64,000 bases of DNA, taken from positions 1 through 64,000 of IMG/VR virus record IMGVR_UViG_3300032116_000001. The stretch is one strand, 5' to 3'. The notes beneath the pieces were generated by a model. The model did not search any database. It was given only the letters and a program-made list of their open reading frames with translations, and had not been told where the DNA came from. Positions 17,710-45,291 of the stretch are shown one piece after another (within the stretch, counting starts at the first letter, position 1; each line of letters begins with the position of its first letter). A program made the position numbers and the translations under genes.

Positions 17710-17777
17710 AACTTTTCAAAGGTGATCGCCGTATAACAAAAGAACATACACAAAGCAAAAGCTTTAAGGACACAATT

Positions 17778-17846
17778 ATGACTCGCCGATATCTTTCACT
17801 GCTAGGACTCTTATCGCTTTCTCTTGAGAAAGCGGCGATTAGCTGA
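17778..17846 (+). CDS. Leu-rich leader peptide MTRRYLSLLGLLSLSLEKAAIS
   Basis: AAGGAC SD; 7 Leu codons in 22 aa; upstream of a terminator and two tRNA-Leu genes. Confidence 0.8.
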   Translation: MTRRYLSLLGLLSLSLEKAAIS

Positions 17847-17908
17847 TAGATTTTGCGATCAGTGTTTAATCCCCGATTTCTCTCAAGGAGTCGGGGATTT
17901 TTGTTTTT
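17815..17908 (+). promoter_or_regulatory. transcription attenuator (1:2, 2:3 and 3:4 terminator helices)
   Basis: 1:2 CGCTTTCT/AGAAAGCG; 2:3 GAGAAAGCGGCGATTA/TAATCCCCGATTTCTC; 3:4 AATCCCCGATTTC/GGAGTCGGGGATT followed by TTTGTTTTT. Confidence 0.8.
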
Positions 17909-17919
17909 GCGTTTCACAT

Positions 17920-18004
17920 ACCGCTCTGGAGTAGCCAAACTTGCTACAGGCAACAGTCTTAGAAACTGTCTCTTTTCTGGGTTGGAATCCCAGGGGCGGT
18001 ACCA
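17920..18004 (+). tRNA. tRNA-Leu (anticodon TAG), atypical
   Basis: ACCGCTC/GGGCGGT-ACCA; ACAGT-CTTAGAA-ACTGT; T-loop TTGGAAT. Confidence 0.75.
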
Positions 18005-18055
18005 ATATTGACAATAGAATAGAGGAAAGAGAAAATAGATTTTCGAGTGATAAAT

Positions 18056-18142
18056 GCGGACGTGGCGGAATTGGTTTACGCGCTACTTTGAGATGGTAGT
18101 CCCCGATTGGGGGTGTGGGTTCGAGTCCCACCGTCCGCACCA
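18056..18142 (+). tRNA. tRNA-Leu (GAG)
   Basis: Full cloverleaf, long variable arm, CCA. Confidence 0.95.
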
Positions 18143-18210
18143 AAAATCCCTCAAATTTTCGAGCCGCGATTGTATATATGAATTATGAATGATTTTCATG
18201 GGAGTGCTCT

Positions 18211-18567
18211 TTGTCTAGTTGGCTGATCGGGTTGATTATCACGTTCTTTGTGATTTATTTTTTCTTCGGGAGTCAAAACCTTGATGATGAAGAAGAAGAT
18301 TTAGAGTACTTACATTCTTGGAAAGATGGAAATGGCTTTACGACTAAAGTAATCCAAATCGGTCACGATAAGATCGTTGTAGAAAATTTTAGCAGAAAGC
18401 GCGGGCGAAAAGTTCGGGTGTGGACTGTTGAAGAATGCGCCAAAGACGCAGGATGGTCAGTTGAAAAGATGAGAGATCATCTTGGCCTTCCCGATGAAAG
18501 CGCTTTAAAAGAAGTTGAAATGACTCTTGGCGAGTGGCTTCACGAAAAGAATCAACATCAAAGATAG
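18211..18567 (+). CDS. membrane-anchored protein, paralog of 17362..17709
   Basis: Paralogy; start uncertain. Confidence 0.7.
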   Translation: MSSWLIGLIITFFVIYFFFGSQNLDDEEEDLEYLHSWKDGNGFTTKVIQIGHDKIVVENFSRKRGRKVRVWTVEECAKDAGWSVEKMRDHLGLPDESALKEVEMTLGEWLHEKNQHQR

Positions 18568-18621
18568 AACCGATCAGTAAAAAATCCCCTGTTTTCGTGG
18601 GGGATTTTTGATAGATAAAGC

Positions 18622-19747
18622 ATGGCAACACGAGGCTGGGAGCCCACAGACTACAATCCGAACATTATTCGTGATGTTTCTAATCGAACCATTGAAGAAT
18701 TTGAAAACGATATTCGATTTTCTCGTGACTGGGGCTTCGTACAAAGTTATGGCCTTGAAAGAGCTACTCAGCTTCTGGGTCGAGCCCCAGATACCCGAGC
18801 AGTTGAATTCTTTAATGAGTTCATGTCTCAGTATTCCCGAGCCGTCGAGCTTATGGAACAGCTAGGCATCAAAAAGAAGATTCTGAAAAAATTCAAGCGA
18901 TATCCGATTGCTCCTTGTCTTTATGCTGATTTGAATGAAGAATGTAATGATGTATTGACGGGATCGAAAATCGGTGGAATTCCTGACCAGCGCCAAGCTG
19001 GAAGTGCGCTGTCTTCAAGGCAATATTGTTAGTCGCATCAAGGCAGCTTGGCCCAAGGATTCAAATGGTAAATATATGATATTCGTTGGCCAAATCAAAG
19101 TGCCTGGACACATCGTCGCTCCCTGGGATTATATCATGGGCGAGAAAATAGACAAGTATGGAAATTATGATCGACCTCTTAATGGGTTTAGCCACGGGCA
19201 GAACATTTTTGAACAAGAGCATACTTATTTAATTTTTCGCAGTGCGCATGCACCAAATTTTGGAGACATGTTCGATTGTGCGATGGTGCATTCTCGCTTC
19301 GATGCCAATGAATCGGTAAAGGAAGATAAATATATTGAGGCTGTGAAAAAAGCTATTCCGCAGTATCGCCGAAGCAACATGGAAGACAATTGTCCAATTT
19401 GGAGTGATCGGTGTCACACGCTAACTGATTACCGAGTTAGCATGACGCTTGATTTAATTCGCGACTTTGAATGGGCAGGTGGGTTTGAAGGCAATGTATT
19501 TGATTACATAGATTCGTGGAGAGAACACTTCGGTTCTTATGGCACAATTCAAATTTTTGGCGATCCAAGATCACAACAGACCCCACAGCGATTTGCTGAA
19601 ACACGCACTGTTTACCGTCCTCGAATGATGCGCCCGTGGCTTGGAATGACAGACCTAAAGCACGATTACACTTGGCAATATAATTTTTGTCACGAAGGTT
19701 TTCTGAGTGAATCAATTATGGGCAAAGTTGATGGAAGCTGTACCTAA
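18622..19747 (+). pseudogene. probable single gene split by a frameshift (18622..19032 + 18974..19747)
   Basis: One promoter, two overlapping ORFs in different frames, no clear start signal for the second. Confidence 0.45.
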
Positions 19748-19791
19748 TTAAAAATCCCCTGTTTTTCATGGGGGATTTTGATATATAAGGC

Positions 19792-20193
19792 ATGGCTGAT
19801 TATTACACCCATTTTTCCTTTGTCGTTGACGTTAAGAATCGTGAACAAGCAGACGGTTTGAAGAAAATGCTCACCCAGGCCAAAAATGAAGAGCTAAATG
19901 AAGAAACTTTGTACACTCCTTGGAGTTGTGAAACTAAGGACGATTTAACTAGCTTTTGGTTTCACTCTGATGATTGTGGTCAGGTTGATCTTATTGTTGA
20001 CATTTTGGCTAAATGGCAAGAAGACTTCAATTACGATCAGCCCATTTGTTTTGAGTGGGCGAATACTTGTAGTAAGCCCAAACTGGATGCTTTTGGTGGT
20101 GGGTCAGTTCTGATTTACAAGGGCGAAGCTCATTACACGAACACTTTTGATTGGTTGACTAAAAAGAAAGCCGAACTTGGAATCGTTGACTGA
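19792..20193 (+). CDS. hypothetical phage protein
   Basis: Promoter motif; MADYYTHFS...FEWANTCSKPKLDAFGGG. Confidence 0.75.
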   Translation: MADYYTHFSFVVDVKNREQADGLKKMLTQAKNEELNEETLYTPWSCETKDDLTSFWFHSDDCGQVDLIVDILAKWQEDFNYDQPICFEWANTCSKPKLDAFGGGSVLIYKGEAHYTNTFDWLTKKKAELGIVD

Positions 20194-20240
20194 CTAAAAA
20201 ATCCCCTGTTTTTCAATAGGGGATTTGATATATCAATTGT

Positions 20241-20375
20241 GCCAAGAAGCACTTGAAGTGCAGTCTACGGATATGCCTTATTAGGGCATGTGATTACTGC
20301 GTAGGAAGGACAGGGTGTAATGAAGTACGGTCGCGACGAAAAGTTACATCGGGTTAAAATCCCAACTTGGCACCA
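20241..20375 (+). ncRNA. 135-nt tRNA-like RNA
   Basis: GCCAAG/CTTGGC-ACCA acceptor, D-like and T-like hairpins, elongated internal arms, own promoter. Confidence 0.6.
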
Positions 20376-20397
20376 AATTGAAAAATGAGAATCTAAT

Positions 20398-20698
20398 CGG
20401 GGCGTGGCGAAATGGCAGACGCAGGGGACTTATAAAATGAGCACTTGTTTGTGAAAGCTGCAAGTGAATGCAATCAAATTCGGTGAAACCTTAACAGTTA
20501 GGCTGATGGCAATACCGAGCCAAGCTAACTCAAAACAGAGTTAGAAGGTGTAGAGACTAGATGGTTGCTGCCTAAGTCGAAAGATATGGCAAAGGTATAG
20601 TCCAGACCACAAAATCCTTTGGGATCGTAGTGAAAGCTATAGTGGTATGAAAATCCCTTAGTAGCAATACTGTGTGGGTTCGAGTCCCACCGCCCCGA
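20398..20698 (+). tRNA. tRNA-Leu (TAA) interrupted by a group I intron
   Basis: Exons 20398-20431 and 20650-20698; joining them restores GGGGA-CTT^AAAA-TCCCT. Confidence 0.92.
20432..20649 (+). mobile_element. group I intron (tRNA-Leu UAA type, IC3-like), 218 nt, no ORF
   Basis: Inserted after the U of the anticodon, ends in G; P AAATTCGGTGAAA, Q AATACCGAGC, R GTAGAGACTAGATGG, S AAGGTATAGTCC. Confidence 0.9.
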
Positions 20699-20748
20699 TT
20701 AGGTTATATATTGATTACTAATGCGCTTTGTGTGCTTTTAGTATAAGA

Positions 20749-21246
20749 ATGTTTGTGTCACGTTTGCAAAAATATACCCTAGAGGAGATAAAAGAAATAA
20801 TATCTAAATCAAAATCTTATGCTGAAGTAATTCGATCTATTGGTTTAATTCCTGCTGGTGGAAATTACAAAACATTGCAAAGTTTTGTACATGAATACCG
20901 AATTGATACTTCGCATTTTCTGGGCTCAGCTTGGGGGCGAGGAAACCAATTGGATTATCTCCACAATAGCAATAGAAAATCATTAGAAGATGTTTTTTCG
21001 GGAAAAGTAGCTTATAAATCAAGCCATAAATTAAGGCTTCGGCTGATTAAAGAAGGATATTTTGAGCATAAATGCTATAAATGTGGACTAAAAGAGTGGC
21101 AAGGACACGAAATACCCTTGGAATTAGAGCATATAAATGGAGATCATTGTGATAACAGTCTCGAAAACCTCATTATTCTTTGCCCCAACTGTCATGCTCA
21201 AACAGAAACTTATGCTGGTAAAAACAAAAAAAGACGATTAGGTTAA
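20749..21246 (+). CDS. HNH homing endonuclease
   Basis: CYKCG...LELEHINGDHCDNSLENLIILCPNCH. Confidence 0.9.
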   Translation: MFVSRLQKYTLEEIKEIISKSKSYAEVIRSIGLIPAGGNYKTLQSFVHEYRIDTSHFLGSAWGRGNQLDYLHNSNRKSLEDVFSGKVAYKSSHKLRLRLIKEGYFEHKCYKCGLKEWQGHEIPLELEHINGDHCDNSLENLIILCPNCHAQTETYAGKNKKRRLG

Positions 21247-21286
21247 AAATCCCCTAAATTTTTCTTCAGATTTCGATAAATTAATT

Positions 21287-21535
21287 ATGATCGATGACAA
21301 AAGAACTTCAGAATGTGTTATTCTTCATATTGAAGTTGATGTTGAGTACCCTGAAGGAATGCATCTTGGGGTTGTTCTATCTGGTTTGCAAAACAATGCG
21401 AAAATTGCCATTACTGAACTTGATGACGATAGGGTCCAAATCACAGCAAATAGAATCACAGCAGTTGAACATTTTGTTACTGGAGAAATTTTAGAAGATT
21501 ACCAGTGGAAAAAGAAAAAAGAATCTCCTCGATAA
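21287..21535 (+). CDS. hypothetical protein
   Basis: Promoter-like motif upstream. Confidence 0.6.
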   Translation: MIDDKRTSECVILHIEVDVEYPEGMHLGVVLSGLQNNAKIAITELDDDRVQITANRITAVEHFVTGEILEDYQWKKKKESPR

Positions 21536-21539
21536 ATGT

Positions 21540-21623
21540 GCCGCAGTGGTGGAATGGTAGACACGGCAAGCTCAAACCTTGCTGCCGAAAGGCGTGAAGG
21601 TTCGAATCCTTTTTGCGGCACCA
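21540..21623 (+). tRNA. tRNA-Leu (CAA)
   Basis: Cloverleaf, GCAAG-CTCAAAC-CTTGC, CCA. Confidence 0.95.
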
Positions 21624-21691
21624 TATTTTCACATATGCATGACTATGTGAAAAATCCCCTGTTTTCTCTTTCTTGATCGGATATATAAATC

Positions 21692-22321
21692 ATGTTTAAT
21701 ATGAATGTGATTCTTTTCAAGAACAATTCTATCGAAGAAAATTATCTTTTCTCTGGTGAAAATTCTGAAGATGTTGCGAAAAAGGCAGAAAGCAAAATGA
21801 TTGAAATTCTTCGTTCAGAAATGTCTAACTTTGACGAATACACGTCGGAAGATATTGACAACATTTTGGAAGATGGATATGAATCCTTTGGAAATGGAGC
21901 GGTTTTTATTACGTGGCCTGACATTGTTGATGTTGATAAGGAGATTGATTCGGAAAATAATTTTGTTTTTCGTGGCACTATTGAATACTCCATCCCGCAC
22001 ATTGATTCAGAAGTAGTTCGCCTGTGCGCCGCACTAAATGAGCCCATTGAAGTTGGTCTACAGTGGGAATCACATTATCGCAATGGTAATGGCTACGCTG
22101 TCCGCGTTAATGCAGATATCTACTCAGTTGATGAAGAACTTGCTGCCGAGGAATTTAGTGATTATTGGGATTCAGGATGCGATGATGAAATTCGCTATTC
22201 TGGGGACTACAATTGGTCCCTTTTGGGCAAAGACTATAAAGAGGCCATCAGTATTCTCCAAAAGTATGTTGATGAGCAAAAGCGTCGTTACCCAGGCTAC
22301 GATATTAGAATTAGCAAATAA
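21692..22321 (+). CDS. hypothetical two-domain protein
   Basis: Promoter motif; C-terminal half resembles 11482..11904. Confidence 0.75.
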   Translation: MFNMNVILFKNNSIEENYLFSGENSEDVAKKAESKMIEILRSEMSNFDEYTSEDIDNILEDGYESFGNGAVFITWPDIVDVDKEIDSENNFVFRGTIEYSIPHIDSEVVRLCAALNEPIEVGLQWESHYRNGNGYAVRVNADIYSVDEELAAEEFSDYWDSGCDDEIRYSGDYNWSLLGKDYKEAISILQKYVDEQKRRYPGYDIRISK

Positions 22322-22358
22322 TCCCCTGTTTTCTCTTTCTTGATCGAATATATAAATC

Positions 22359-22781
22359 ATGACAATTGACGGAAAGTTGCTTAAAAGACTAATGTGTAGC
22401 AACGAGGCTTTTGATATTTTGGGTGACATCGTAAGTTGGAATTCTGGAGGTTGCTGGATTCTTGCCGAAGCTCTGCGCCGATTCATTGGCGATCAGGCTA
22501 CTATCGTGGCCATCGCTGATGATCGCTGCCAACACCAACATATTGTCGTGAAAGTGGGGAATTTGTATTATGACGCCGACGGAGAGTCGAACGAAGGGCG
22601 TCTGCTGCATCGCTGGATGGATTATGAACGACTCCGTAATCCTCGAATCGTAGGTTTTGATCCAGAACTGGCCGCTGATTTAGAAATTCCTTGCGAAGAA
22701 GAACTTGTAACGCAAGTCTATAACTTGCTGAACTCGCGTCTGAAAAATCCCCTTTTTTCACAATCGGGAGCGCATATATAA
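22359..22781 (+). CDS. hypothetical protein, possible papain/transglutaminase-like Cys-His-Asp fold
   Basis: GGCWILAEAL...HIVV...YYDADG. Confidence 0.55.
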   Translation: MTIDGKLLKRLMCSNEAFDILGDIVSWNSGGCWILAEALRRFIGDQATIVAIADDRCQHQHIVVKVGNLYYDADGESNEGRLLHRWMDYERLRNPRIVGFDPELAADLEIPCEEELVTQVYNLLNSRLKNPLFSQSGAHI

Positions 22782-22784
22782 ATC

Positions 22785-22991
22785 ATGGACCCATTTCTTT
22801 TTTATTCTACCTATTTTATCTTGGGACTTGGTTTTATGTTCGCATTGATGGCAATCGGAGCGCATCACTATACCAATGGCCCATCTCGTGAACAAGAACA
22901 AAAACAAAGAATCAAGTTTATTATTCTATCAGTGCTTTTAATAGCTAGTGCAATTTTTCTGGGCCGTTATGCTGCGGGTCTGCTTTTTTGA
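22785..22991 (+). CDS. small membrane protein
   Basis: Promoter motif; 2 TM. Confidence 0.7.
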   Translation: MDPFLFYSTYFILGLGFMFALMAIGAHHYTNGPSREQEQKQRIKFIILSVLLIASAIFLGRYAAGLLF

Positions 22992-23057
22992 TTTCATTCT
23001 CTTGAAATGGTTTTAAAAAATCCCCTTTTTTCAGAAAACCAAATCAATATAAAAAAT

Positions 23058-23378
23058 ATGCGAATTCGACCGCAATCCGACCCGAACAAGGAATATCTCA
23101 TCGACTTTTACTACCCGTATGGGAAGCAAGGACACAAGAAGAAGGGCACCAAGACTGTCTGCACTATCTCTGTCGGCCCTGTGGGTAGTCTCGACAAGGA
23201 CAAGACCGAAGTCTCGACCACTACCGTTCGCCGACATAGTACCGATCAGGACAATCTTGTCGTAGCTCGTAATTATGCACTGGCCAAGGCCCTATCCCCG
23301 ATTGAAGCTAGTGTCCGACAAGAGATTTGGGAACAGGCTCCGATTCGACGAGCAGACATTTCCCTGGAACTCGACTAA
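23058..23378 (+). CDS. hypothetical phage protein
   Basis: Promoter motif; followed by an inverted repeat at 23391-23426. Confidence 0.7.
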   Translation: MRIRPQSDPNKEYLIDFYYPYGKQGHKKKGTKTVCTISVGPVGSLDKDKTEVSTTTVRRHSTDQDNLVVARNYALAKALSPIEASVRQEIWEQAPIRRADISLELD

Positions 23379-23505
23379 ACTCCAAAAACATTCTCATTGA
23401 GGGAGAATTTAATCCCTCAATGAGAAAAAACAAAAAACTGCTAACAAAAAGCAGGTGATCGTCGTATAATAAGAGAAGAAACTGAAAAGCACAAAGAGCT
23501 ATATT

Positions 23506-23628
23506 ATGAATCATCTCTTATCGACGACAATATGTGGAACAACAGGAACCTCAACAAGAGGAATCCTTTCCCTTGGCGTTATCGGCAAGGATAGTGATTC
23601 TGATTCAGGAGAACCCATCGAATCGTAG
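23506..23628 (+). CDS. Gly/Ser/Thr-rich leader peptide (40 aa)
   Basis: MNHLLSTTICGTTGTSTRGILSLGVIGKDSDSDSGEPIES; run of GGA/ACA/TCA codons; upstream of a terminator and tRNA-Gly/Ser/Thr. Confidence 0.8.
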   Translation: MNHLLSTTICGTTGTSTRGILSLGVIGKDSDSDSGEPIES

Positions 23629-23689
23629 CTTTACTGTGATTACAGAACAAAGAGGCTCGATTCGATAAGATCGAGCCTCTTTTCTTTTT
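23617..23689 (+). promoter_or_regulatory. transcription attenuator (antiterminator overlapping the leader stop, plus terminator)
   Basis: 2:3 ATCGAATCG(T)AGCTTT/GAGGCTCGATTCGAT; 3:4 AAAGAGGCTCGAT/ATCGAGCCTCTTT followed by TCTTTTT. Confidence 0.8.
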
Positions 23690-23818
23690 AGATATGATGT
23701 CTGGGAAGAGAAAGATCGAATATTGAAAATTTCATACAGGTATAGATATAAAAGTGTTAGGGGGTGTTGGATCGATCTTTGATCGCAGGCCTCACCCCCT
23801 TGATCGAGACACATTTTC

Positions 23819-23892
23819 GCGAGATTGGTATATGGGTTGTGCCCTAGCCTTCCAAGCTAGAGAAAAGGGTTCGAATCCCTTATCTCGCTCCA
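23819..23892 (+). tRNA. tRNA-Gly (TCC)
   Basis: GCGAGAT/ATCTCGC-TCCA; CTAGC-CTTCCAA-GCTAG. Confidence 0.95.
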
Positions 23893-23943
23893 ATTTAAGA
23901 CACATTTCTTTGTGCTGCCAATGGGCAGCTTTCAAAAGAAAAC

Positions 23944-24030
23944 GGATGGGTGACAGAGCGATCTATTGTAGCGGTCTTGAAAACCGCCGTGCCAAAAGCA
24001 CCGTGGGTTTGAATCCCACCCCATCCTCCA
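23944..24030 (+). tRNA. tRNA-Ser (TGA)
   Basis: GGATGGG/CCCATCC-TCCA; long variable arm. Confidence 0.92.
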
Positions 24031-24128
24031 TTTTGTAACAAAATCATAAAATTCAAAGCAGGTGTAGCTCAGTGGTAGAGCGCCCGCCGCGAAGGTTGAT
24101 GGTTGCAATATCGATAAATAGATTATGT

Positions 24129-24545
24129 ATGGCAATAACAAAATACAAAGGAGCCGTCGGGCTAACTAATGTAATGGCCTGTCTTGTCAATCAAAAAGCA
24201 AAAATCTTTGTTCCAATAGACGAAGACTGTCAATATGACCTGGTGGTAGATTATCAAAATTATCTTTACAGAGTGCAAGTTAAATATGCTGAGGCAAAAA
24301 ATGGCAAGATCGTTGTAAAGACGCGCTCAACGAATAACTATTGTGAAATTCGTTATACTAAAGATCATTTTGACGTGATTGCTGTTTGGGACAATGTTGG
24401 CAAAAAAGCATATTTTATTTCATCGAATTTAATCACAGAAGGAATGACGGAAATGACCTTGAGATTAGATGCACCAAAAAACAATCAAACTAAAAACATA
24501 AGATTGGCTCGTAATTATGAGCAATTTAATGCTGCGGTCGCATAG
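24129..24545 (+). CDS. PD-(D/E)XK homing endonuclease (I-Ssp6803I/PDDEXK_5-like)
   Basis: YDLVVD...RVQVK...YTKDHFD...LRLDAPKNNQ. Confidence 0.85.
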   Translation: MAITKYKGAVGLTNVMACLVNQKAKIFVPIDEDCQYDLVVDYQNYLYRVQVKYAEAKNGKIVVKTRSTNNYCEIRYTKDHFDVIAVWDNVGKKAYFISSNLITEGMTEMTLRLDAPKNNQTKNIRLARNYEQFNAAVA

Positions 24546-24613
24546 TGGTCGATTGCACCTCTCTTGTAAAGAGGAACTCCACACCGTGGGTTCGAATCCC
24601 ACCCGTAGCTCCA
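24531..24613 (+). tRNA. tRNA-Thr (TGT)
   Basis: GCTGCGG/CCGTAGC-TCCA; CCTCT-CTTGTAA-AGAGG; overlaps the endonuclease stop. Confidence 0.9.
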
Positions 24614-24725
24614 TTTTTCGCACATATGTGTCAGGGGTTCGAATCCCCTCTCCTGCTTTGAGTTGAGTGATGATATCCGATCATAAAAAATCCCCCTTTT
24701 TCTCAATAGTGATCGGATATATAAA

Positions 24726-25325
24726 GTATTGCTGTGAGCTAAATCAATTGACACAGCATGATGAAACCAAAATCATCTAAAAACAATAAGGTGCTCCATA
24801 TACGTCTGGGAAAGATAAATTAGACGTGGACACACTGTGATGTGGACTAATCACAGCGCACTGGGGCATGTGTGCAAGCCCGAAAAGCCTATCTTTACTG
24901 ATATAGTTAAAGAGAAAGAGCAGAGAGTTAAGGCTTAAAATAAACTCCATGCGTTCGTAAGGATGAACTCAAAGACGAGTTCAGTTATGACTAGGATACG
25001 AGAGGAGGGAGGCAATGAGTTTCTCTCCTCTCCCCGACAAAGCGATTTCCGACTGCTCATCGGAGAAGTGATCTAGTAAAACACTCAGAAAAACACTAGC
25101 GTAGGAAATGCGTTAATCCCTGATTTTTTATCGGTTTTTAGAGACAAAAAACTGTTCGTATAGGGCTTGCGGTAAGCCTCTTGTTTTAGCTAGGTGATCC
25201 TGTATGTAAAAACCAAGCGGATGGAACAAATCAATTTGTTTTCGCGAGCAAATGATCCATTGACTTTGGGGAACAGCGTAAGAACGTTTCGCCATGAGGC
25301 TTTGAGCAAAGTCTCGTTCCCCAAA
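24726..25325 (+). ncRNA. large structured ncRNA (~600 nt), ROOL/GOLLD-like
   Basis: No + strand ORF of 60 aa or more, own promoter, many helices, located between tRNAs. Confidence 0.65.
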
Positions 25326-25339
25326 AATAAAAAGATTCT

Positions 25340-25416
25340 GGGTATGTAGTTCAGTTGGTTAGAGCACCTGCCTGTCACGCAGGAAGTCGCGAGTTCAAGT
25401 CTCGTCATATCCGCCA
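25340..25416 (+). tRNA. tRNA-Asp (GTC)
   Basis: Canonical cloverleaf, CCA. Confidence 0.97.
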
Positions 25417-25436
25417 AAATTTCCAAAGGAGACAAA

Positions 25437-25652
25437 ATGAATAGACAAATAGAAAGCCTCGATCATCTGGTGTCTCTTGGGCTACTGACATCATATGAGT
25501 TTGTAAACGTGTCAGCCAATAACATTGAGGGCGAGATTTCAGAACATCATAATTCTGATCGATTGAAACTCATATTCCCGAATGGGTTGGAAGTGAAGAT
25601 CACTGCGATCACAACAGGCATGGAAGAAGATGCTCTTTTGAGATTGGAATAA
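25437..25652 (+). CDS. hypothetical protein
   Basis: AAGGAG SD. Confidence 0.65.
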   Translation: MNRQIESLDHLVSLGLLTSYEFVNVSANNIEGEISEHHNSDRLKLIFPNGLEVKITAITTGMEEDALLRLE

Positions 25653-37065: not shown

Positions 37066-37081
37066 AATTTCCATCACTCTC

Positions 37082-38260: not shown

Positions 38261-38305
38261 CTTAATTTTCCCCGTTTTTGCACGATCAGAATCAATATAT
38301 AAAGT

Positions 38306-38633
38306 ATGAGCAAAATCACAATTGGAATCTACAAGTCCGATGGCACTCTACTTGGTTACAAGGCAAGCCCCAAGTGGACACTCACTTCTGACAAAAGTGA
38401 TGCCGAACGCTACGTTTACAATCCAAGCGGGGATGGTTACAATTACAACATTGAGAAAGTGTTCCATATTGTCACGCGCAATCATGGGGCCTCTAAATTT
38501 CGTTTTCGATGAAATCTTCAACATACTAAAGTCTCACAAAGGTTTGAGAATCGGATATGAGTTTGAGGATTCTGACGAGCCTGTAATCACACACATGATT
38601 GAAAGCTCGGGTGTCTACCAAATTTCCCCTTAA
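38306..38633 (+). pseudogene. frameshifted paralog of 38663..38992
   Basis: Extra C at ~38483 (CGCAATCATGGG vs CGCAATATGGG in the paralog). Confidence 0.75.
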
Positions 38634-38662
38634 TTTCTAAAAAGCAATCAATATATAAAGCA

Positions 38663-38992
38663 ATGAAGGACACAATTGCTATTGGCATTTACCACTCTGA
38701 CGGAAAACTTCTCGGATACAAAGTAGACACGTTTTGGTCACTTTCTCAAGACAAAGCTGATGCCAAGCCTCACATTTTTGATGAAAAAGGAGAAATCCCC
38801 GATAATATTATTGGTAATCTAAGTCAGATTGTCACGCGCAATATGGGTCCTCTAGCCTTCTTCTCCGCAGAAACCGTGAACAAGATCAGTTCTCATAAGG
38901 GTCTCCGAGTGGGCTATGAACAAGATGGCTCCGACAAGCCTGTGATCACACACATGATCGAGGCTACAGGGGTTCATAAAATTTCCCCTTAA
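38663..38992 (+). CDS. hypothetical protein
   Basis: Intact paralog; promoter motif upstream. Confidence 0.75.
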   Translation: MKDTIAIGIYHSDGKLLGYKVDTFWSLSQDKADAKPHIFDEKGEIPDNIIGNLSQIVTRNMGPLAFFSAETVNKISSHKGLRVGYEQDGSDKPVITHMIEATGVHKISP

Positions 38993-39020
38993 TTCCAAAC
39001 AAAACTCCCTATATAAAGAC

Positions 39021-39917
39021 ATGAGTAGAGTAAAGAGAGTTATTGATAATGGTCTGGTATCGAAAAACTCAGTGCCAAAGCACTTCCCCGATTCGATTCA
39101 ATACGAGACGATCATGGGAAGTGTGGCCTACGGAGTGTCTTCTGATACGTCGGATATGGATATTTATGGATTTTGTATCCCGCCCAAGCACATTGTCTTT
39201 CCTCACTTAGCGGGACATATCCCTGGCTTTGGTCAACAGCCTGAGAAATTCGAGCAATGGTCGGTGCATCATATCAAAGATGAAGAAAAAAATACCGAGT
39301 ACGATTTTTGCATTTACAATATCGTCAAGTATTTTAGTTTGGTTATGGAAAACAATCCCAACATGGTGGATTCTCTTTTCACTCCACAAAACGCGATTTT
39401 GCACTGCTCTCCAATCGCTCAAATGGTGCGTGACGAACGTCATATCTTCTTGCATAAGGGAGCGTGGCACAAGTTCAAGGGCTATGCCTACTCGCAGATG
39501 CACAAAATTCGATCAAAGGAGGCTCCGCAAGGCAAGCGAAAAGAGCTGGTGGAACAGTTTGGATTCGACGTGAAGTTTGCTTATCATGTTGTAAGATTGA
39601 TTGACGAAGTTGAGCAAATTCTTGTTGAGGGCACTCTTGATCTTCAAAGAAATCGAGAACAGCTTAAATCTATTCGGAGAGGTGAATGGACTTTAGAGGA
39701 AATCGAGGAATACTTTACTCGTCGAGAAAAAGAACTTGAGCTGGCTTATGCTAACTCAAAGCTGCCTCACACGCCCGATGAAAAGCGAATCCGCCAGCTT
39801 TTGATGAATTGCCTTGAGCATCATTACGGAAACCTATCAGACGCCGTAGTGGATGTTGACGCGGCCACGAGAACACTTCAGCAAGTTGCGCATCTAATTC
39901 GACAAGGGGGATTCTAA
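39021..39917 (+). CDS. DNA polymerase beta-superfamily nucleotidyltransferase (YcgL-like)
   Basis: GSVAYGVSSDTSDMDIYG; NPNMVDSL; DVKFAYHVVRL. Confidence 0.88.
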   Translation: MSRVKRVIDNGLVSKNSVPKHFPDSIQYETIMGSVAYGVSSDTSDMDIYGFCIPPKHIVFPHLAGHIPGFGQQPEKFEQWSVHHIKDEEKNTEYDFCIYNIVKYFSLVMENNPNMVDSLFTPQNAILHCSPIAQMVRDERHIFLHKGAWHKFKGYAYSQMHKIRSKEAPQGKRKELVEQFGFDVKFAYHVVRLIDEVEQILVEGTLDLQRNREQLKSIRRGEWTLEEIEEYFTRREKELELAYANSKLPHTPDEKRIRQLLMNCLEHHYGNLSDAVVDVDAATRTLQQVAHLIRQGGF

Positions 39918-39957
39918 AAATCCCCCGTTTTTTCTTTTTTGATCAATATATAATTCC

Positions 39958-40308
39958 GTGAGCATCAACAGATTGCAGCTATCACCATCGGTTCTCGAAA
40001 AGCTCGATTCTCTAATTAATCGAGCTAAGGAAATTGAGAAGAACGCTCCTGATGACTATGACGAAAATGGAGTCATCATTGATTTTTTGGGAGACAACAC
40101 AAAGACCAAGGCCCAATCAGCGATCAGTTTTTTCCGCGATTCTATTACAGAACGAGCAACACGCCTTTCTGAAAATCTTGTTGAAGCTATTGAGCAACAG
40201 GTTCCGCAATTACCAGATCATCCTCTTGAAGCCTTTGATATCGCGAATCAACCCAAAAGCCCAATGAGAAACATGATGATTCGGAATGAAATTGATCTTC
40301 TTGATTGA
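39958..40308 (+). CDS. hypothetical protein
   Basis: GTG start after the promoter motif. Confidence 0.65.
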   Translation: MSINRLQLSPSVLEKLDSLINRAKEIEKNAPDDYDENGVIIDFLGDNTKTKAQSAISFFRDSITERATRLSENLVEAIEQQVPQLPDHPLEAFDIANQPKSPMRNMMIRNEIDLLD

Positions 40309-40351
40309 TAAAATTCCCCTTTGTTTTTGAATCCAATCGGATATATAAGAA

Positions 40352-40708
40352 GTGAAGTTCAATCAAGAAGCGCCTGGTGAATTTGTTTCGTCCTGTGGCA
40401 ATTGGTGCATTCAAGCATCCAATTCTAAGTTCCGCGCATTTAAGGTTTTCACTCAAATCAACCTTGGGCCTTTTGACACTTTTGAATTAGCAGTCGCGGG
40501 CATCGGCGATTATGACCCCAGCACTTGCAGCCGCGATGAAGAATTCGATGTTGATGACCGTGTGCAAGTTCCCGCGCCCGTAGAGGGCGATTTGCACAAT
40601 CATGAATTTGTTGGTACAATTGTGGGTTTTCGTGAAGATTATGCCCAGGTCGAAGATATGGAAGGTAATGTTTTCGATATTGAACCATGCAGACTCGAAA
40701 AGATTTAG
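40352..40708 (+). CDS. hypothetical protein (SH3-like C-terminus)
   Basis: GTG start after the promoter motif. Confidence 0.7.
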   Translation: MKFNQEAPGEFVSSCGNWCIQASNSKFRAFKVFTQINLGPFDTFELAVAGIGDYDPSTCSRDEEFDVDDRVQVPAPVEGDLHNHEFVGTIVGFREDYAQVEDMEGNVFDIEPCRLEKI

Positions 40709-40753
40709 TCAAAAAATCCCCTTAGTTCATGGTGCAAAAATCATATATTAAGG

Positions 40754-41065
40754 GTGGACAAGCGAGAACCCAGTAACCTTTTTGACGCTTTTAGCATTTG
40801 TGCAGAAATTATTAAGCAAATGCTAGCAGGACGTTCGACTGCCGAAATCATCGACAGCATTGACGTGAATGAAGAACATCTTGCCAACATTGCCGCCGAC
40901 ATGATTGTTGTTTGTGGGTTGAATAATGATTTGGCGATGGTTCTTAATGATGGAGAAACTTACACAAACATCTCAGGGTGTTCTATTCGGCAAATGACCG
41001 AAGAGTTTGACGAAGATGGGGAGTTCGTTGAAGATACGTTCGGTGACCCTATCATCGTAATGTGA
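40754..41065 (+). CDS. hypothetical protein
   Basis: GTG start after the promoter motif. Confidence 0.65.
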   Translation: MDKREPSNLFDAFSICAEIIKQMLAGRSTAEIIDSIDVNEEHLANIAADMIVVCGLNNDLAMVLNDGETYTNISGCSIRQMTEEFDEDGEFVEDTFGDPIIVM

Positions 41066-41188
41066 GTAAATTGACAGGAAACTAATCGGGGCAATGAAGC
41101 CCTGATTTTTTATAACTTTCTACGATTGTGCGGCACGATCATTATAAAAATCCCCCTTATTAATCGGCTCAATTTACTATAATGATAT

Positions 41189-41527
41189 ATGTACCACGTA
41201 GACGATTGCGTTATCGGAAAAGAAATTGCAAGTCAGGCTGAATATCATATCAATGTTTATGACTATGACGTTCGGTTATGTTCCGATGGCTGTTGCATTG
41301 AGGCGCGGACGGCAGCTGAACTTTGGAGCAACGACTGTAAAACTTTTCTAACCGAAGATGTGGATGGGTTTTGCAATAGTGGCGAGGCCGCTCAGAAGGT
41401 AATCAATTTGGCCAAGGCGCGTGGCCTCAATGTTCATCGAGGTAATACGGCGATCTATGTGGACGGCGATAGAGATTGTTCTAACGAATTGATTTACGGA
41501 TTGAAAAAATTTCCCCTAGATTACTGA
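41189..41527 (+). CDS. hypothetical protein
   Basis: Promoter-like motif upstream. Confidence 0.65.
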   Translation: MYHVDDCVIGKEIASQAEYHINVYDYDVRLCSDGCCIEARTAAELWSNDCKTFLTEDVDGFCNSGEAAQKVINLAKARGLNVHRGNTAIYVDGDRDCSNELIYGLKKFPLDY

Positions 41528-41551
41528 GACAAGAGGCATATATAAACTACC

Positions 41552-42292
41552 ATGACAATCGAACACGATAACATCGAAGAGCGAGTTGGAAAGGGAACTT
41601 TAATTCGTATTTCCAAGCTGCTTACCATGGCGAAGGATAAGCGCACGAACGAGAATGAAGCCCATAGCGCTATGCAATCGGCTCTTGCGCTTTTGTCTCG
41701 GTATAACATTACGGCTTCTGATGTTGAGAATTCGGGCATTTTCGAGGAAGCAGTGGGTTCTGAATCTTTTAATCCAACTGAAAATCGAAATCACTCCACA
41801 TGGCGATCCCAGCTAATCAATTCCATCGCAAGCACTCACTTCTGTCATGTCTATCGACGAAACGGGGGCGAGTTTATTCTGACTGGTAAGGAAACTAATC
41901 GTGCCGCCGCGATGATGCTTTTTCAGTATCTTTCCGTCGTGATTGAAGAAAATGCCCTTCAGGCTGTCCGCGAATACGACGGATGGGAATCGAAAAAGAC
42001 TTATGGCAATGCCTATCGGCTTGGAATGGTGACTCGAATTAATGAACGACTTATTGACCAAAAGCGCCAAATTATTCAAGAGGCTTCATCCAATAACACT
42101 GAAATTGTTGCTGTCAATCCTTATGAACAGGCCGAAAAAGAAAATCAAGCCTATGTCAAATCGAAGGGCGTAAAACTGTCGTCACACGCCTCAAGCAGTA
42201 ATCTTGGAAGTGGCGCGGGTTGGCATCGAGGGCGCAAAGATGGCGAGCGCGTTGGGCTTACCGCTGGGCGAGCACTAGGATATAAAAAGTGA
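41552..42292 (+). CDS. DUF2786 domain protein
   Basis: RISKLLTMA...NENEAHSAMQSALALLSRYNI; AYRLGMV; GWHRGRKDG. Confidence 0.8.
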   Translation: MTIEHDNIEERVGKGTLIRISKLLTMAKDKRTNENEAHSAMQSALALLSRYNITASDVENSGIFEEAVGSESFNPTENRNHSTWRSQLINSIASTHFCHVYRRNGGEFILTGKETNRAAAMMLFQYLSVVIEENALQAVREYDGWESKKTYGNAYRLGMVTRINERLIDQKRQIIQEASSNNTEIVAVNPYEQAEKENQAYVKSKGVKLSSHASSSNLGSGAGWHRGRKDGERVGLTAGRALGYKK

Positions 42293-42717
42293 GAGATACG
42301 CAAAAAGCCAAATTTTACAAATTCGAGGACTATATCATCAAGCGATTCCTCCAAAAAGAACTACATGATGGACTTGAATTTCGAGAAATCGAAGGGCTTG
42401 TTGGAAGAATCTGCCATTCTTATAATGTCCGCCCGCCAAAGATAAAGGTCGGTCGGCAGAATTCGAGCAAAGCCTACTACAAAACGATTGACCATAGTAT
42501 CACGCTTCCGCCATGGGCTCAGAGAACATGGACGGTAGTCCATGAAACAGCTCATGCAATTACTTATGGGAAAGGATATAAGGACCCTGGGCACGATGGT
42601 GATTTTGTTGGAGTATGGGTAGAGCTTTTTTCAAGAATGTATGACATCCCCAAGGAAACTCTTGAGTCGGAAGTTAAGCTGGCGGGATTGAGATATGTCA
42701 AATTTTCCCCCAAATAA
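42289..42717 (+). CDS. SprT-like HExxH zinc metallopeptidase
   Basis: ITLPPWA...VVHETAH...GHDGDF. Confidence 0.75.
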   Translation: MRDTQKAKFYKFEDYIIKRFLQKELHDGLEFREIEGLVGRICHSYNVRPPKIKVGRQNSSKAYYKTIDHSITLPPWAQRTWTVVHETAHAITYGKGYKDPGHDGDFVGVWVELFSRMYDIPKETLESEVKLAGLRYVKFSPK

Positions 42718-42742
42718 ATCAGAAAGAAATCATATATAAGAC

Positions 42743-42958
42743 ATGAACACCAAGCAAAATCAGGTCGCAGATGACATTTATAATCGGCTTTCCAGTTCCG
42801 CGCCTGGGTTTTATCGATATTGGTCTGATACGGTTGACCGATCAGTGGCCCAAGCACTAATCAAAAAGGGACCATTTTTCAGTTACGGCAATTCTTGGCG
42901 ATTCAAGGCCGAAAGTCTCGGGGCTGGAATGTATCGTGTCAAGATCATTGAAGCCTAG
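42743..42958 (+). CDS. hypothetical protein
   Basis: Promoter motif upstream. Confidence 0.65.
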   Translation: MNTKQNQVADDIYNRLSSSAPGFYRYWSDTVDRSVAQALIKKGPFFSYGNSWRFKAESLGAGMYRVKIIEA

Positions 42959-43029
42959 TCCCGATCAGGCCATCTTCATAAAAATCCCTTATTTTTATCG
43001 TTTCGATTCGATATAAAAAGGGAGGCTAA

Positions 43030-43482
43030 ATGATTACCCTTTTCAAGTTCGAGACCGAAGATGACGGCACGATTATCATTCCGATGGAGAAAATCGGAGT
43101 CACTATCAAGGACCTACAAGATGCCTTCAAGGAGGCAAAAGAACACGCCCAAGACGAATATGATGTAGAGCTGACCAAAGACACGATTTTCACAGTCGAA
43201 GAAGTCCACGGCCTGAAAGATTTTCTTGAGAAATACACTCTAATCGAGCGTCCGACGGCGAAGGCTGGCAAACCGTTCTCTAAAGCCGTTTTTGACCCTG
43301 ATTTGCATACCCTTCCCGAAGTTGCAGACCAGAACCAAGTCTGGACCTGGACCGATTGTGATGATGGCGGAAGTTATCTGATTCAAGGATACCATCATGC
43401 CAATCGCTTGGGCTATATCTTTACTGAAAACAAAGATGGAGAACCAGTGCCGATTGATGGAAACTCCTACTTTGTAGACTAG
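43030..43482 (+). CDS. hypothetical phage protein
   Basis: GGAGG SD; VWT...GYHHANRLGY. Confidence 0.7.
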   Translation: MITLFKFETEDDGTIIIPMEKIGVTIKDLQDAFKEAKEHAQDEYDVELTKDTIFTVEEVHGLKDFLEKYTLIERPTAKAGKPFSKAVFDPDLHTLPEVADQNQVWTWTDCDDGGSYLIQGYHHANRLGYIFTENKDGEPVPIDGNSYFVD

Positions 43483-43850
43483 GTGACTGGGAACAAGAAA
43501 GGGGGAAGTAACTCCCTCTTTCTTTATGACTTTCCGTGATTATGCGCCACGATCATTAAAAATCCCCTATATCTTATATTCCAATCGGATATATAAGATA
43601 TAATGAAAACCAAACATGTTTTTCGAGTTTACCCCAAGAATGCAACATCTTCCGAGGATGCTTTGGTAATTGAGAAAACCATAAGCCCGAAATCTGTCCT
43701 TCGAGTAATGGGAAACCTTCTTGGCAAGTATAATGCTTCAGAAGTGGCTTTATTGAAATCCGAGGACAAATAAGACTTTTTTAACAAAAAGTCCCAAAAT
43801 CATAGGACGATTTTGTTTTTTGATCGTATAATAGATAAGGACACTTTATT

Positions 43851-43943
43851 ATGAAGACCCACACCACATCAAATACGAATATGGTCTTCACCCGACGCAA
43901 TTCCGCGACGGGCGTCCAACAACGCTGTCGGCGTTCCGCTTAA
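43851..43943 (+). CDS. Gln/Arg/Cys leader peptide MKTHTTSNTNMVFTRRNSATGVQQRCRRSA
   Basis: AAGGAC SD; CAA CAA CGC TGT CGG CGT codon run; upstream of tRNA-Gln x2, tRNA-Arg x2 and tRNA-Cys. Confidence 0.75.
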   Translation: MKTHTTSNTNMVFTRRNSATGVQQRCRRSA

Positions 43944-44032
43944 GTCGGGCTGACACGTTACCACCTGCAAGTAACTTCTTTTTCGAAGAATTAGCCCGCT
44001 CTCTGAGCGAGACGTCGATTATCATCTCGTGC

Positions 44033-44106
44033 TCGGGGATCGTCTAGAGGCAGGACTCTGGTCTCTGGAACCAGAAGCGGTGGTTCGAATCCATCTCTCC
44101 GAGCCA
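44033..44106 (+). tRNA. tRNA-Gln (CTG)
   Basis: TCGGGGA/TCTCCGA-GCCA; CTGGT-CTCTGGA-ACCAG. Confidence 0.93.
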
Positions 44107-44113
44107 GCTTCAC

Positions 44114-44199
44114 TGGGTCTTAGGCGAATTGGTAGAGCCGCCTGTCTTTGGAACAGGACTCCTGAAAAGGTGGAGGTTCGAATCCTCCCGACCCAGCCA
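44114..44199 (+). tRNA. tRNA-Gln (TTG) with enlarged variable arm
   Basis: CCTGT-CTTTGGA-ACAGG; GCCA end. Confidence 0.88.
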
Positions 44200-44271
44200 A
44201 TTAAAGGCTTTATGCATTTTGAAAAAATAATTAAAAAAGGCTTTCTTAACAGAAGTACATAATTAAAACGA

Positions 44272-45057
44272 GTGATTCAAACTTCCAATAAGAAAACAAG
44301 AGTAAAGCGCAGTCGAATTTGGACGATGCCTAAAGACGAGTTCGCTCAACTAGTGGCCTCAAGTCAAACTTATGTCGAAATTCTCCGAGCCATTAACTAC
44401 ACCATACGAGGAGGAGCTTTTCGAATTTTAAAAGAACGAATTGCGACAGAAATGATCGACGATTCACATATATTAAAGAATGGAAGGCAAACCATTTATG
44501 CCCATAGATTCAATACTCGGTCAGATGACGATATATTTTGCGAAAATTCTACATACAATAGTGGCCCTGCCCTGAAAAAGAGAATGATTAAGCTAGGCTT
44601 ACCTGAAGAATGCACAAAATGTGGGCTTGGTGCAACATGGAATGATGAACCTCTATCTCTGCAAGTAGACCATATCAATGGGGTGCGCAACGATAACAGA
44701 TTAGAGAATTTGAGGCTTCTGTGCCCAAATTGTCATTCTCAAACCGAAAATTTTGCTGGCAGAAAGTTGAACGCAAAAAACAAATCATGTCCAGAATGCT
44801 GCGCTAAGATCAGTGGATACCGTAAAGATCAGAGATGCCAATCTTGTGCCAATAAGATCAGGTCTAGAGAAATGCAACTAATATCAAAACCATCAAAAGA
44901 CGAGCTTCAAGATATGTTGTGGAAAATGCCCGCGACTAGGATTGCTAAGATATACAATGTGTCCGATAAAACAGTTGGTAATTGGGCTAAATCCTACAAA
45001 ATTGACAAACCGAGCCGTGGACACTGGGTCAAAAAAAATACTCCCCCCCCCTTGTAG
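44272..45057 (+). CDS. HNH homing endonuclease with C-terminal zinc-finger/HTH
   Basis: LQVDHINGVRNDNRLENLRLLCPNCHSQT; ATRIAKIYNVSDKTVGNW. Confidence 0.9.
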   Translation: MIQTSNKKTRVKRSRIWTMPKDEFAQLVASSQTYVEILRAINYTIRGGAFRILKERIATEMIDDSHILKNGRQTIYAHRFNTRSDDDIFCENSTYNSGPALKKRMIKLGLPEECTKCGLGATWNDEPLSLQVDHINGVRNDNRLENLRLLCPNCHSQTENFAGRKLNAKNKSCPECCAKISGYRKDQRCQSCANKIRSREMQLISKPSKDELQDMLWKMPATRIAKIYNVSDKTVGNWAKSYKIDKPSRGHWVKKNTPPPL

Positions 45058-45123
45058 CTTAATGGATAGAGCGCAGCACTTCGGATGCTGATGTTATGGG
45101 TTCGAGTCCTATCGAGGGGGCCA
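45048..45123 (+). tRNA. tRNA-Arg (TCG)
   Basis: CAGCA-CTTCGGA-TGCTG; overlaps the HNH stop. Confidence 0.9.
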
Positions 45124-45134
45124 AAATTTAAAAC

Positions 45135-45210
45135 ACGCCTGTAGCTCAGTGGATAGAGCATCAGCTTGCGGAGCTGAGGGTCGGAGGTTCGAACCCTCTC
45201 AGGCGTGCCA
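45135..45210 (+). tRNA. tRNA-Arg (GCG)
   Basis: TCAGC-TTGCGGA-GCTGA; GCCA end. Confidence 0.92.
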
Positions 45211-45216
45211 ATATAC

Positions 45217-45291
45217 GGCCACGTACCCAAATGGTTAAGGGCTCCCTCTGCAAAAGGGATGTTGCGAGTTCGATTCTCGCCGTGGCCTCCA
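45217..45291 (+). tRNA. tRNA-Cys (GCA)
   Basis: GGCCACG/CGTGGCC-TCCA; U73 discriminator. Confidence 0.95.

Follow-up and report, generated by a model that had tools for sequence, protein, structure and literature searches.

Why should a huge phage place very short ORFs directly in front of its tRNA genes? In the window analysed here (64,000 nucleotides, positions 1 to 64,000 of IMGVR_UViG_3300032116_000001), three such ORFs (u1, u2, and u3) lie upstream of tRNA clusters, and a sequence-only reading proposed that they are leader-peptide attenuators whose control codons match the anticodons of the tRNAs that follow. Our analysis supports this proposal, with corrections. The phage probably makes those tRNAs only when ribosomes run short of them, although translation of the leaders and conditional read-through are inferred, without transcript or ribosome data for any unit. 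The features of the three units are collected in the table.

Features of the three leader–tRNA units in the window (pairings are from in silico folding)
Unit	Position	Strand	Feature	Details
u1	17720–17737	+	Promoter-like box	AGGTGATCGCCGTATAAC; lacks the AAAAATCCCC box of the phage's standard promoter
u1	17768–17773	+	Shine-Dalgarno-like AAGGAC	4 nt before ATG
u1	17778–17846	+	Leader ORF, 22 aa	MTRRYLSLLGLLSLSLEKAAIS; 7 Leu codons (CUU x3, CUG, CUA, CUC, UUA); CUU, CUG, CUA, CUC, and UUA all fall within codons 6–12
u1	17814–17822	+	Segment 1	UCGCUUUCU; pairs with segment 2 when no ribosome is present
u1	17826–17841	+	Segment 2	GAGAAAGCGGCGAUUA; pairs either with segment 1 or, as the antiterminator, with 17867–17882 (14 bp in 3 helices)
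u1	17868–17909	+	Intrinsic terminator	Hairpin at 17868–17899, 14-bp stem, -20.1 kcal/mol, then UUUUUGUUUUUG
u1	17920–18004	+	Atypical tRNA-like gene	Anticodon UAG (Leu), CCA encoded; starts about 10 nt after the U-tract of the terminator
u1	18056–18142	+	tRNA-Leu(GAG)	
u2	23453–23470	+	Promoter-like box	AGGTGATCGTCGTATAAT
u2	23506–23628	+	Leader ORF, 40 aa	Contains ACG ACA AUA UGU GGA ACA ACA GGA ACC UCA ACA AGA GGA; 19 of 39 residues are Gly/Ser/Thr, with a run STTICGTTGTSTRG
u2	23617–23632	+	Antiterminator 5' strand	AUCGAAUCG.AGCUUU; spans the last three codons and the stop codon, pairs with 23652–23666 in the 5' arm of the terminator
u2	23644–23692	+	Intrinsic terminator plus U-tract	Hairpin at 23644–23685, -21.8 kcal/mol
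u2	23819–24030	+	tRNA-Gly(UCC) and tRNA-Ser(UGA)	
u2	24531–24613	+	tRNA-Thr(UGU)	Downstream of an inserted ORF
u3	43822–43832	+	Promoter-like box	GATCGTATAAT
u3	43851–43943	+	Leader ORF, 30 aa	Codons 23–28 (CAA CAA CGC UGU CGG CGU, 43917–43934) are all cognate to the downstream tRNAs
u3	43927–44019	+	Long-range helix	43927–43953 pairs with 43991–44019; ties the control codons and stop codon to the sequence abutting tRNA-Gln; no U-tract, so not an intrinsic terminator
u3	44033–44199	+	tRNA-Gln(CUG) and tRNA-Gln(UUG)	
u3	44272–45057	+	HNH endonuclease ORF	Mobile insert interrupting the cluster
u3	45048–45291	+	tRNA-Arg(UCG), tRNA-Arg(GCG), and tRNA-Cys(GCA)	

To test whether the observation is real, the signals around the three ORFs were inspected first. 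A GATCG(N0-3)TATAA box, an A-rich 5' UTR, and ATTATG are present in all three units, and AAGGAC is present in u1 and u3. GATCGNNNTATAA occurs only at u1 and u2 (2 matches against 0.14 expected), while GATCGTATAA occurs at u3, plus once on the minus strand at 11122–11131. The surrounding genes really are leaderless, as the sequence-only reading had claimed: about 70 copies of AAAAATCCCC-N~20-ATCGGATATATAA are followed 2–4 nt later by ATG. Three of its claims needed correction. What it called tRNA-Leu(UAG) is atypical, since ARAGORN does not call it and Rfam gives 25 bits against a threshold of 29, although it does fold as a cloverleaf with anticodon UAG, discriminator A, and an encoded CCA. The Gln, Arg, and Cys tRNAs of u3, which it had listed as one cluster, are split by the HNH endonuclease ORF. 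Finally, strong terminators follow u1 and u2, but none follows u3, where the best hairpin reached only -1.2 kcal/mol, so that three attenuators are supported structurally for two. The sequence is not an assembly artefact, as three independent metagenome assemblies are 100% identical over 9.8–13 kb.

We next asked whether the match between leaders and tRNAs exceeds chance. The local-score permutation p values were about 0.008, 0.0008, and 0.002 for u1, u2, and u3, respectively (range for u1, about 0.008–0.014). In u2, 13 of 19 Gly/Ser/Thr codons are cognate to the U34 anticodons (7.5 expected, P = 0.008), although a synonymous-codon test across units gave no clear result. In a systematic scan of all tRNA-upstream regions in the window and relatives, the three units were the top hits of the window. 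In the 3x3 leader-by-cluster matrix, each leader scored highest against its own cluster (13.2, 15.7, and 13.3, against 6.2 or less off the diagonal). The composition of u3 is not specific when the whole ORF is considered (p = 0.14), with 10/29 Gly/Ser/Thr residues against 8/29 Gln/Arg/Cys. Moreover, seven other tRNA genes in the window have no such leader.

No variant relatives of this phage exist in the collections, and therefore we tested analogues, asking whether the codon identity of sORF+terminator units upstream of other viral tRNA clusters covaries with tRNA content. The same sORFs scored against the tRNA sets of other loci served as the permutation null. At p<=0.05, 4/12 units were significant in set 1 and 12/73 in set 2 (P = 2.6e-4). 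The unfiltered test on set 2 had shown no enrichment (4 observed, 4.4 expected at the 99th percentile), and the terminator filter was added after seeing that result; only set 3, a fresh sample analysed with a frozen pipeline, is thus a clean replication. In set 3, 14/63 units matched by the binomial score (P = 2e-6) and 16/63 by the local score (P = 6e-8), against 3.2 expected, with 8/63 at p<=0.01 (P = 2e-7). sORFs without a terminator remained at chance level (17/323 and 12/314), as the attenuation model predicts. Among the matching leaders, 11 of 31 start with Met-Lys, against 9% of control sORFs (Fisher 4e-5), which is indirect support for translation. L025, the analogue locus that was noticed first, is not significant (p 0.17–0.3), and phage T5 shows no such pattern.

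The cultured Cellulophaga phage phi4:1 has three such leaders (units A–C), which partition its 23-tRNA array. MKIQRLHLQELEQP.. precedes Pro Glu Gln His Leu Leu Arg, ..KIKVQLTKTGITVIDKTKGARAYLGDTVIG precedes Ala Lys Ile Gly Met Asp Thr Val Arg Met, and MKTNYCTYNNSNWSFSY.. precedes Tyr Ser Asn Trp Phe. Each is followed by a terminator, and the 3x3 match matrix is diagonal.

To test whether the position of a ribosome could switch these structures, we folded the leaders with the ribosome footprint masked. For u1, helix 1:2 and the terminator form with no ribosome. With the A-site at codons 1–12, which include all five Leu codon types, a 14-bp antiterminator forms (-4 to -8 kcal/mol), whereas at codon 13 or later, or at the stop, there is none. 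In silico, u1 shows the mutually exclusive 1:2, 2:3, and 3:4 helices of a classical attenuator. For u2, the antiterminator energy was -12 to -17 kcal/mol, falling to -6 to -8 near the stop codon. Several analogues switched in the same direction: L027 (MMMNRNNSNNIEGHA before two tRNA-Asn) went from -8 to -11 down to 0, and L036 (MFTHSHHIHHHCSEGSGKV before two tRNA-His) from -15 to -2. In phi4:1 units A–C, the antiterminator energy was high at the control codons and about 0 just after them. Interestingly, u2, L027, and L036 form the antiterminator even with no ribosome, unlike trpL. A generic test for complementarity between the stop-codon region and the 5' arm of the terminator did not separate matching from non-matching units (26% against 12% with z<-1.5; Mann-Whitney p = 0.38), and the antiterminator could not be demonstrated as a general rule across 31 units.

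These findings make ribosome-mediated control of transcription into the phage's own tRNA clusters the likely explanation, provided that the polymerase using the GATCG..TATAA promoters does not ignore intrinsic terminators. In this model, a dedicated promoter with a long, SD-bearing 5' UTR, unlike the leaderless genes of the phage, starts a transcript that first encodes a 22–40 aa peptide rich in the codons read by the tRNAs immediately downstream. If these codons are decoded quickly, the ribosome reaches the stop codon and covers the 5' strand of the antiterminator; the strong terminator then forms and RNA polymerase stops before the tRNA genes. If a cognate tRNA is scarce, uncharged, or cleaved, the ribosome stalls on a control codon, the antiterminator forms, and transcription reads through. 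The result would be negative feedback on tRNA supply, with composite leaders acting as an OR gate over several tRNA species. u3 shares the codon logic but not the terminator, and it may act through Rho-dependent termination or through processing of the tRNA precursor.

The case of u3 suggests an alternative in which the association is real, but translation of the leader controls processing, stability, or folding of the tRNA precursor (RNase P, E, or III access), or Rho loading, at least for u3 and perhaps for many units. A 23-bp interrupted helix links the control codons of u3 to the sequence abutting tRNA-Gln, and these codons sit immediately before the stop codon, as may be the case in tnaC-type Rho-dependent control. 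The non-significant generic antiterminator test is also in line with this view. However, the association is confined to sORFs followed by an intrinsic terminator, and u1 and phi4:1 unit A show complete three-state attenuator folds; we regard this as an unlikely general explanation. It is also conceivable that the polarity is opposite, with efficient translation promoting read-through, for example by a coupled ribosome suppressing the hairpin, so that tRNAs are made when translation is healthy. The untranslated RNA of u2, L027, and L036 already favors the antiterminator, and the direction of control therefore depends on ribosome kinetics. Nevertheless, the terminator stems begin 15–31 nt after the stop codons in most matching units, beyond the roughly 12–15 nt reach of a terminating ribosome, and in every well-behaved unit a ribosome at the stop codon removes the antiterminator rather than the terminator. 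This reading is improbable.

Least probable is that the sORFs are ordinary small genes, or untranslated spacers with their own terminators, that the tRNAs are transcribed independently, and that the match in this window is chance plus post-hoc selection. The three units were indeed chosen by eye, the unfiltered set 2 showed no enrichment, and u2 has 128 nt between its terminator and tRNA-Gly, containing a TTGAAA-18-TATAAA match. In contrast, the first tRNA of u1 and the analogues starts 10–20 nt after the terminator, leaving no room for a separate promoter in u1 and most analogues. The replication in set 3 with its negative control, the diagonal matrices of both the window and phi4:1, and the His, Asn, and other leaders in unrelated phages also disfavor this explanation.

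A broader reading seems somewhat more likely than not. The units would represent a widespread class of viral regulatory element, composite leader-peptide attenuators that test-translate the exact set of codons served by the downstream phage tRNA cluster and switch the cluster on when any one of those tRNAs becomes limiting. In phages such as phi4:1, three leaders together cover essentially the whole array. This would give phages a built-in, codon-resolved sensor of host tRNA depletion, including cleavage by anticodon-nuclease defences; this trigger, put forward in the sequence-only reading, is plausible but hypothetical. The mechanism class is known, whereas the target and the multi-amino-acid composite leaders are new; our literature searches found no prior description.

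Among known systems, T-box riboswitches likewise sense the state of a specific tRNA and control read-through of a terminator upstream of genes for the same amino acid, but they bind the tRNA directly through a specifier codon and need no translation, and no T-box match was found here. Leaderless Cys-rich sORF attenuators in mycobacteria (bioRxiv 10.1101/834739) are amino-acid-responsive attenuators of downstream genes. L025, L027, and L036 have TTGAC(A/G)-N17-TATAAATAA-N4-ATG, which points to leaderless leaders, but the mycobacterial attenuators target Cys-metabolism operons and are not followed by tRNA genes. In the pheM-pheST attenuator of E. coli, a Phe-codon leader appears to sense charged tRNA-Phe and to control a gene of the translation apparatus handling the same amino acid; that gene would be the aminoacyl-tRNA synthetase rather than the tRNA, and this cellular system would sense a single amino acid. 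The leader-peptide transcription attenuators of amino-acid operons (trpL, leuL, hisL, thrL, pheL, ilvL) have a short leader ORF with clustered control codons followed by an intrinsic terminator, and mutually exclusive helices read out by ribosome position; u1 and phi4:1 unit A reproduce all three states in silico. The His-rich L036 and Leu-rich u1 leaders look like hisL and leuL. There is no sequence or structure homology to the Rfam leader families (Leu_leader, His_leader, Thr_leader, Trp_leader, etc.): no hit reached the gathering threshold in the window, and in E-value mode the only hit was a minus-strand Thr_leader match of 22.7 bits against a threshold of 55. In the present case the elements are viral, some units default to read-through when untranslated, the regulated genes are the tRNAs themselves rather than biosynthetic enzymes, and many leaders are composite, listing 3–10 different amino acids that mirror the downstream tRNA set.

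The sequence was taken from IMGVR_UViG_3300032116_000001, a 378,848-bp phage contig carrying rIIA/rIIB. It has no match in INPHARED and no close relative among isolated phages, the nearest rIIA in isolates being about 29% identical. The genes are driven by a very regular promoter, AAAAATCCCC-N~20-(A)ATCGGATATATAA, with ATG 2–4 nt downstream, which makes the mRNAs leaderless. There are about 70 copies, and the AATCCCC box often doubles as the 5' arm of the terminator of the preceding gene. In IMG/VR, this pattern hits only this contig. A metagenome scan returned three independent assemblies, which are 100% identical to the window over 9.8–13 kb. At two sites, standard promoters are followed directly by G-rich structured-looking RNA starts rather than ATG (GGGGCAAATAGCTCAG..., GGTGTCCAGGGGGCGGTGAAAGTCCG...). 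Rfam finds nothing there, and they may be unclassified small RNAs.

ARAGORN and Rfam found 15 tRNA genes, all on the plus strand. Two more exist: a tRNA-Leu(UAA) interrupted in the anticodon loop by a group I intron, and an atypical tRNA-like gene with anticodon UAG. Inspection of the three short ORFs (sORFs) that precede tRNA clusters, u1, u2 and u3, showed that their codons, GATCG..TATAA boxes, A-rich UTRs, ATTATG and AAGGAC motifs are all as described in the sequence-only reading. That reading did not state that u1 and u2 are each followed by a strong intrinsic terminator, while u3 is not. The first tRNA after u1 starts about 10 nt past the U-tract. In the u3 cluster, the Arg/Arg/Cys tRNAs lie behind an HNH homing-endonuclease-like insert. 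The other seven tRNA genes in the window have no such leader; they follow ordinary ORFs or a standard promoter directly. A fourth box resembling the u1/u2 promoter (GGTGATCCTGTATGTAA) sits after a terminator upstream of tRNA-Asp, but the ORF it precedes runs into tRNA-Asp and has a single Asp codon, so there is no leader-type match. Near tRNA-Thr, two halves of a tRNA-like gene are separated by about 540 nt holding an ORF and a complete tRNA-Thr, which looks like a tRNA gene disrupted by a mobile cassette.

Positions of the features discussed in the text (window coordinates unless a record is named)
Feature	Position	Detail
Standard phage promoter	e.g. 1935, 2905, 13622, 21653, 28385, 59030	
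u1 segment 1	17814-17822	pairs with 17827-17835 (segment 2) when untranslated
u1 segment 2 as antiterminator	17826-17841	14 bp with 17867-17882
u1 intrinsic terminator	17868-17899	about -20 kcal/mol
Atypical tRNA-like gene, anticodon UAG	17920-18004	
tRNA-Leu(UAA), split	20401-20699	Rfam Intron_gpI 20421-20624, 58 bits
u2 antiterminator 5' strand	23617-23632	spans the last three codons and the stop codon
u2 intrinsic terminator	23644-23685	about -22 kcal/mol
Halves of a tRNA-like gene	about 24058-24095 and about 24630-24660	5' acceptor/D-arm and T-arm/3' acceptor
ORF between the halves	24127-24530	
tRNA-Thr between the halves	24531-24613	
Fourth promoter-like box	25193-25210	upstream of tRNA-Asp 25340
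u3 long interrupted helix	43927-43953 with 43991-44019	joins the control codons and stop codon to sequence just upstream of tRNA-Gln
HNH homing-endonuclease-like ORF	44272-45057	phrog_10822, E=1e-47; 3' end overlaps the start of tRNA-Arg by 10 nt
Promoters followed by G-rich RNA starts	about 48400 and about 50967	
Cellulophaga phage phi4:1 (NC_021788.1), three leader units	locus 5874-5942, 6798-6917, 8580-8678	
Acidobacteriota MAG (CAWILL010000004.1), two sORF+terminator units	around 1172 and 2436	

To test whether the leaders can form mutually exclusive structures, we folded each of them with a 29-nt ribosome footprint masked at successive A-site codons, the RNA being truncated before the 3' arm of the terminator. 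In these calculations, u1 behaves as a textbook attenuator. When it is untranslated, segment 1 pairs with segment 2 and the 5' arm of the terminator is free. With the A-site on codons 1–12, which include CUU, CUG, CUA, CUC and UUA, segment 2 pairs with the terminator arm and sequesters it. From codon 13 to the stop codon, this pairing is lost. For u2, a 15-bp antiterminator was found, whose stabilization drops from about -16 to about -6 kcal/mol when the ribosome reaches the end. In u3, which has no terminator, a long interrupted helix is present instead.

Homologues with sequence variation do not exist in the collections, and therefore we looked for analogues. Loci around a nucleotidyltransferase shared with about 45 huge-phage contigs gave unrelated examples straight away: MFTHSHHIHHHCSEGSGKV, 126 nt before two tRNA-His (locus L036), and MMMNRNNSNNIEGHA, 114 nt before two tRNA-Asn (locus L027). 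Each has a sigma70-like promoter placed for a leaderless start, a strong terminator, and the tRNA 9–17 nt after it. Both switch in silico in the same direction as u1. Interestingly, several of these huge-phage relatives also carry, near the shared nucleotidyltransferase gene, amber-suppressor-type tRNAs with the anticodon CUA, labelled 'Pyl' by ARAGORN (L031, L032, L055, L060 and L063), and phage-encoded tmRNAs (L037 and L049). The suppressor tRNAs hint at stop-codon reassignment.

To assess whether the codon/tRNA match exceeds chance, we fixed two scores, a binomial tail and a local segment score, for residues whose amino acid is among the tRNAs within 1.3 kb downstream. The sORFs had 8–60 codons and lay within 350 nt upstream of a tRNA run. 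The null was exchangeable, the same sORFs being scored against the tRNA sets of all other loci; a null excluding overlapping tRNA sets was discarded because it was biased towards significance. On a generic sample of viral tRNA clusters (the second set), all upstream sORFs taken together showed no enrichment. When an intrinsic terminator was required within -12 to +70 nt of the stop codon, 12 of 73 units were significant at p<=0.05 (P=2.6e-4). Since this filter was chosen after seeing the second set, we fetched a fresh sample and ran the frozen pipeline on it. This third set gave 14/63 by the binomial score (P=2e-6), 16/63 by the local score (P=6e-8), and 8/63 at p<=0.01 (P=2e-7), from 13 different contigs.

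The sORFs without a terminator were at chance (17/323 and 12/314). Over the three sets, 31 of 148 sORF+terminator units match at p<=0.05, against 7.4 expected. The unit L025, which first drew our attention to the pattern, is not significant and was not counted, and phage T5 shows no codon/tRNA match. A sample of bacterial genomes displayed only weak enrichment (5/36, P=0.03). It included a tRNA array of an Acidobacteriota MAG with two upstream units whose composition resembles the downstream tRNA sets (MTIKTKSMMRRRVNR..., ..HTDCFPTPATFTWQGAGEGT..), which could be a cellular or prophage counterpart. In the window, u1, u2 and u3 have p about 0.008, 0.0008 and 0.002, and the 3x3 leader-by-cluster matrix is diagonal.

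One matching metagenomic unit led, by tRNA similarity, to the Cellulophaga phage phi4:1, which is cultured with Cellulophaga baltica. Its 23-tRNA array is divided into three subclusters, each preceded by a Bacteroidota-type promoter, a leader and a terminator. The leader of unit A is MKIQRLHLQELEQPIISGGTGV, followed by Pro Glu Gln His Leu Leu Arg. Unit B (..KIKVQLTKTGITVIDKTKGARAYLGDTVIG, annotated gp075) precedes Ala Lys Ile Gly Met Asp Thr Val Arg Met, and unit C (MKTNYCTYNNSNWSFSYDTG..) precedes Tyr Ser Asn Trp Phe. The matches are 11 consecutive residues, 26/30 residues and 12/14 residues, with permutation p of 0.001–0.002, and the 3x3 matrix is diagonal. The antiterminator energy is -4 to -17 kcal/mol at the control codons and about 0 just after them. 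Units A and C are unannotated, while gp075 is called from a doubtful TTG start inside the promoter; there is no in-frame ATG, so its true start codon is unclear.

Further support was obtained from the leaders themselves. Matching leaders start with Met-Lys in 35% of cases, against 9% of controls. Within u2 alone, the Gly/Ser/Thr codons are biased to those read by the U34 anticodons present (13/19 against 7.5 expected, P=0.008). On the other hand, a generic test for antiterminator complementarity was not significant.

The model best supported by these results is ribosome-mediated transcription attenuation that gates phage tRNA genes, with negative-feedback polarity, in which composite leaders would act as an OR gate over the tRNAs of the cluster. 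The sequence data reveal the anatomy, the alternative predicted structures of u1, u2 and several analogues, and a replicated, terminator-dependent association between leader composition and downstream tRNA identity. Translation of the leaders, stalling and conditional read-through are inferred from these, as is the physiological trigger, which may be host tRNA decay, codon-usage demand or anticodon nucleases. The unit u3 needs a different read-out, which may be Rho or precursor processing.

The reason why phages carry tRNAs has been debated for 50 years, the proposals being codon compensation, replacement of degraded host tRNAs, and escape from anticodon nucleases. A regulatory element that states in its own codons that these tRNAs are to be made when these codons are slow would be direct evidence that phage tRNA supply is demand-controlled. 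Each unit would then also be a compact natural sensor for the availability of a specific tRNA. No known Rfam leader or T-box family matches the units. In the literature searched, which did not cover most subscription journals and thus cannot exclude older reports, leader-peptide attenuation was found only for biosynthetic, resistance and synthetase genes, with no report of leaders upstream of tRNA genes in phages or cells. The mechanism itself is a textbook one; relative to those genes, what is new here is the target class, RNA genes of the translation apparatus, and the composite form of the leaders, which name several amino acids at once.
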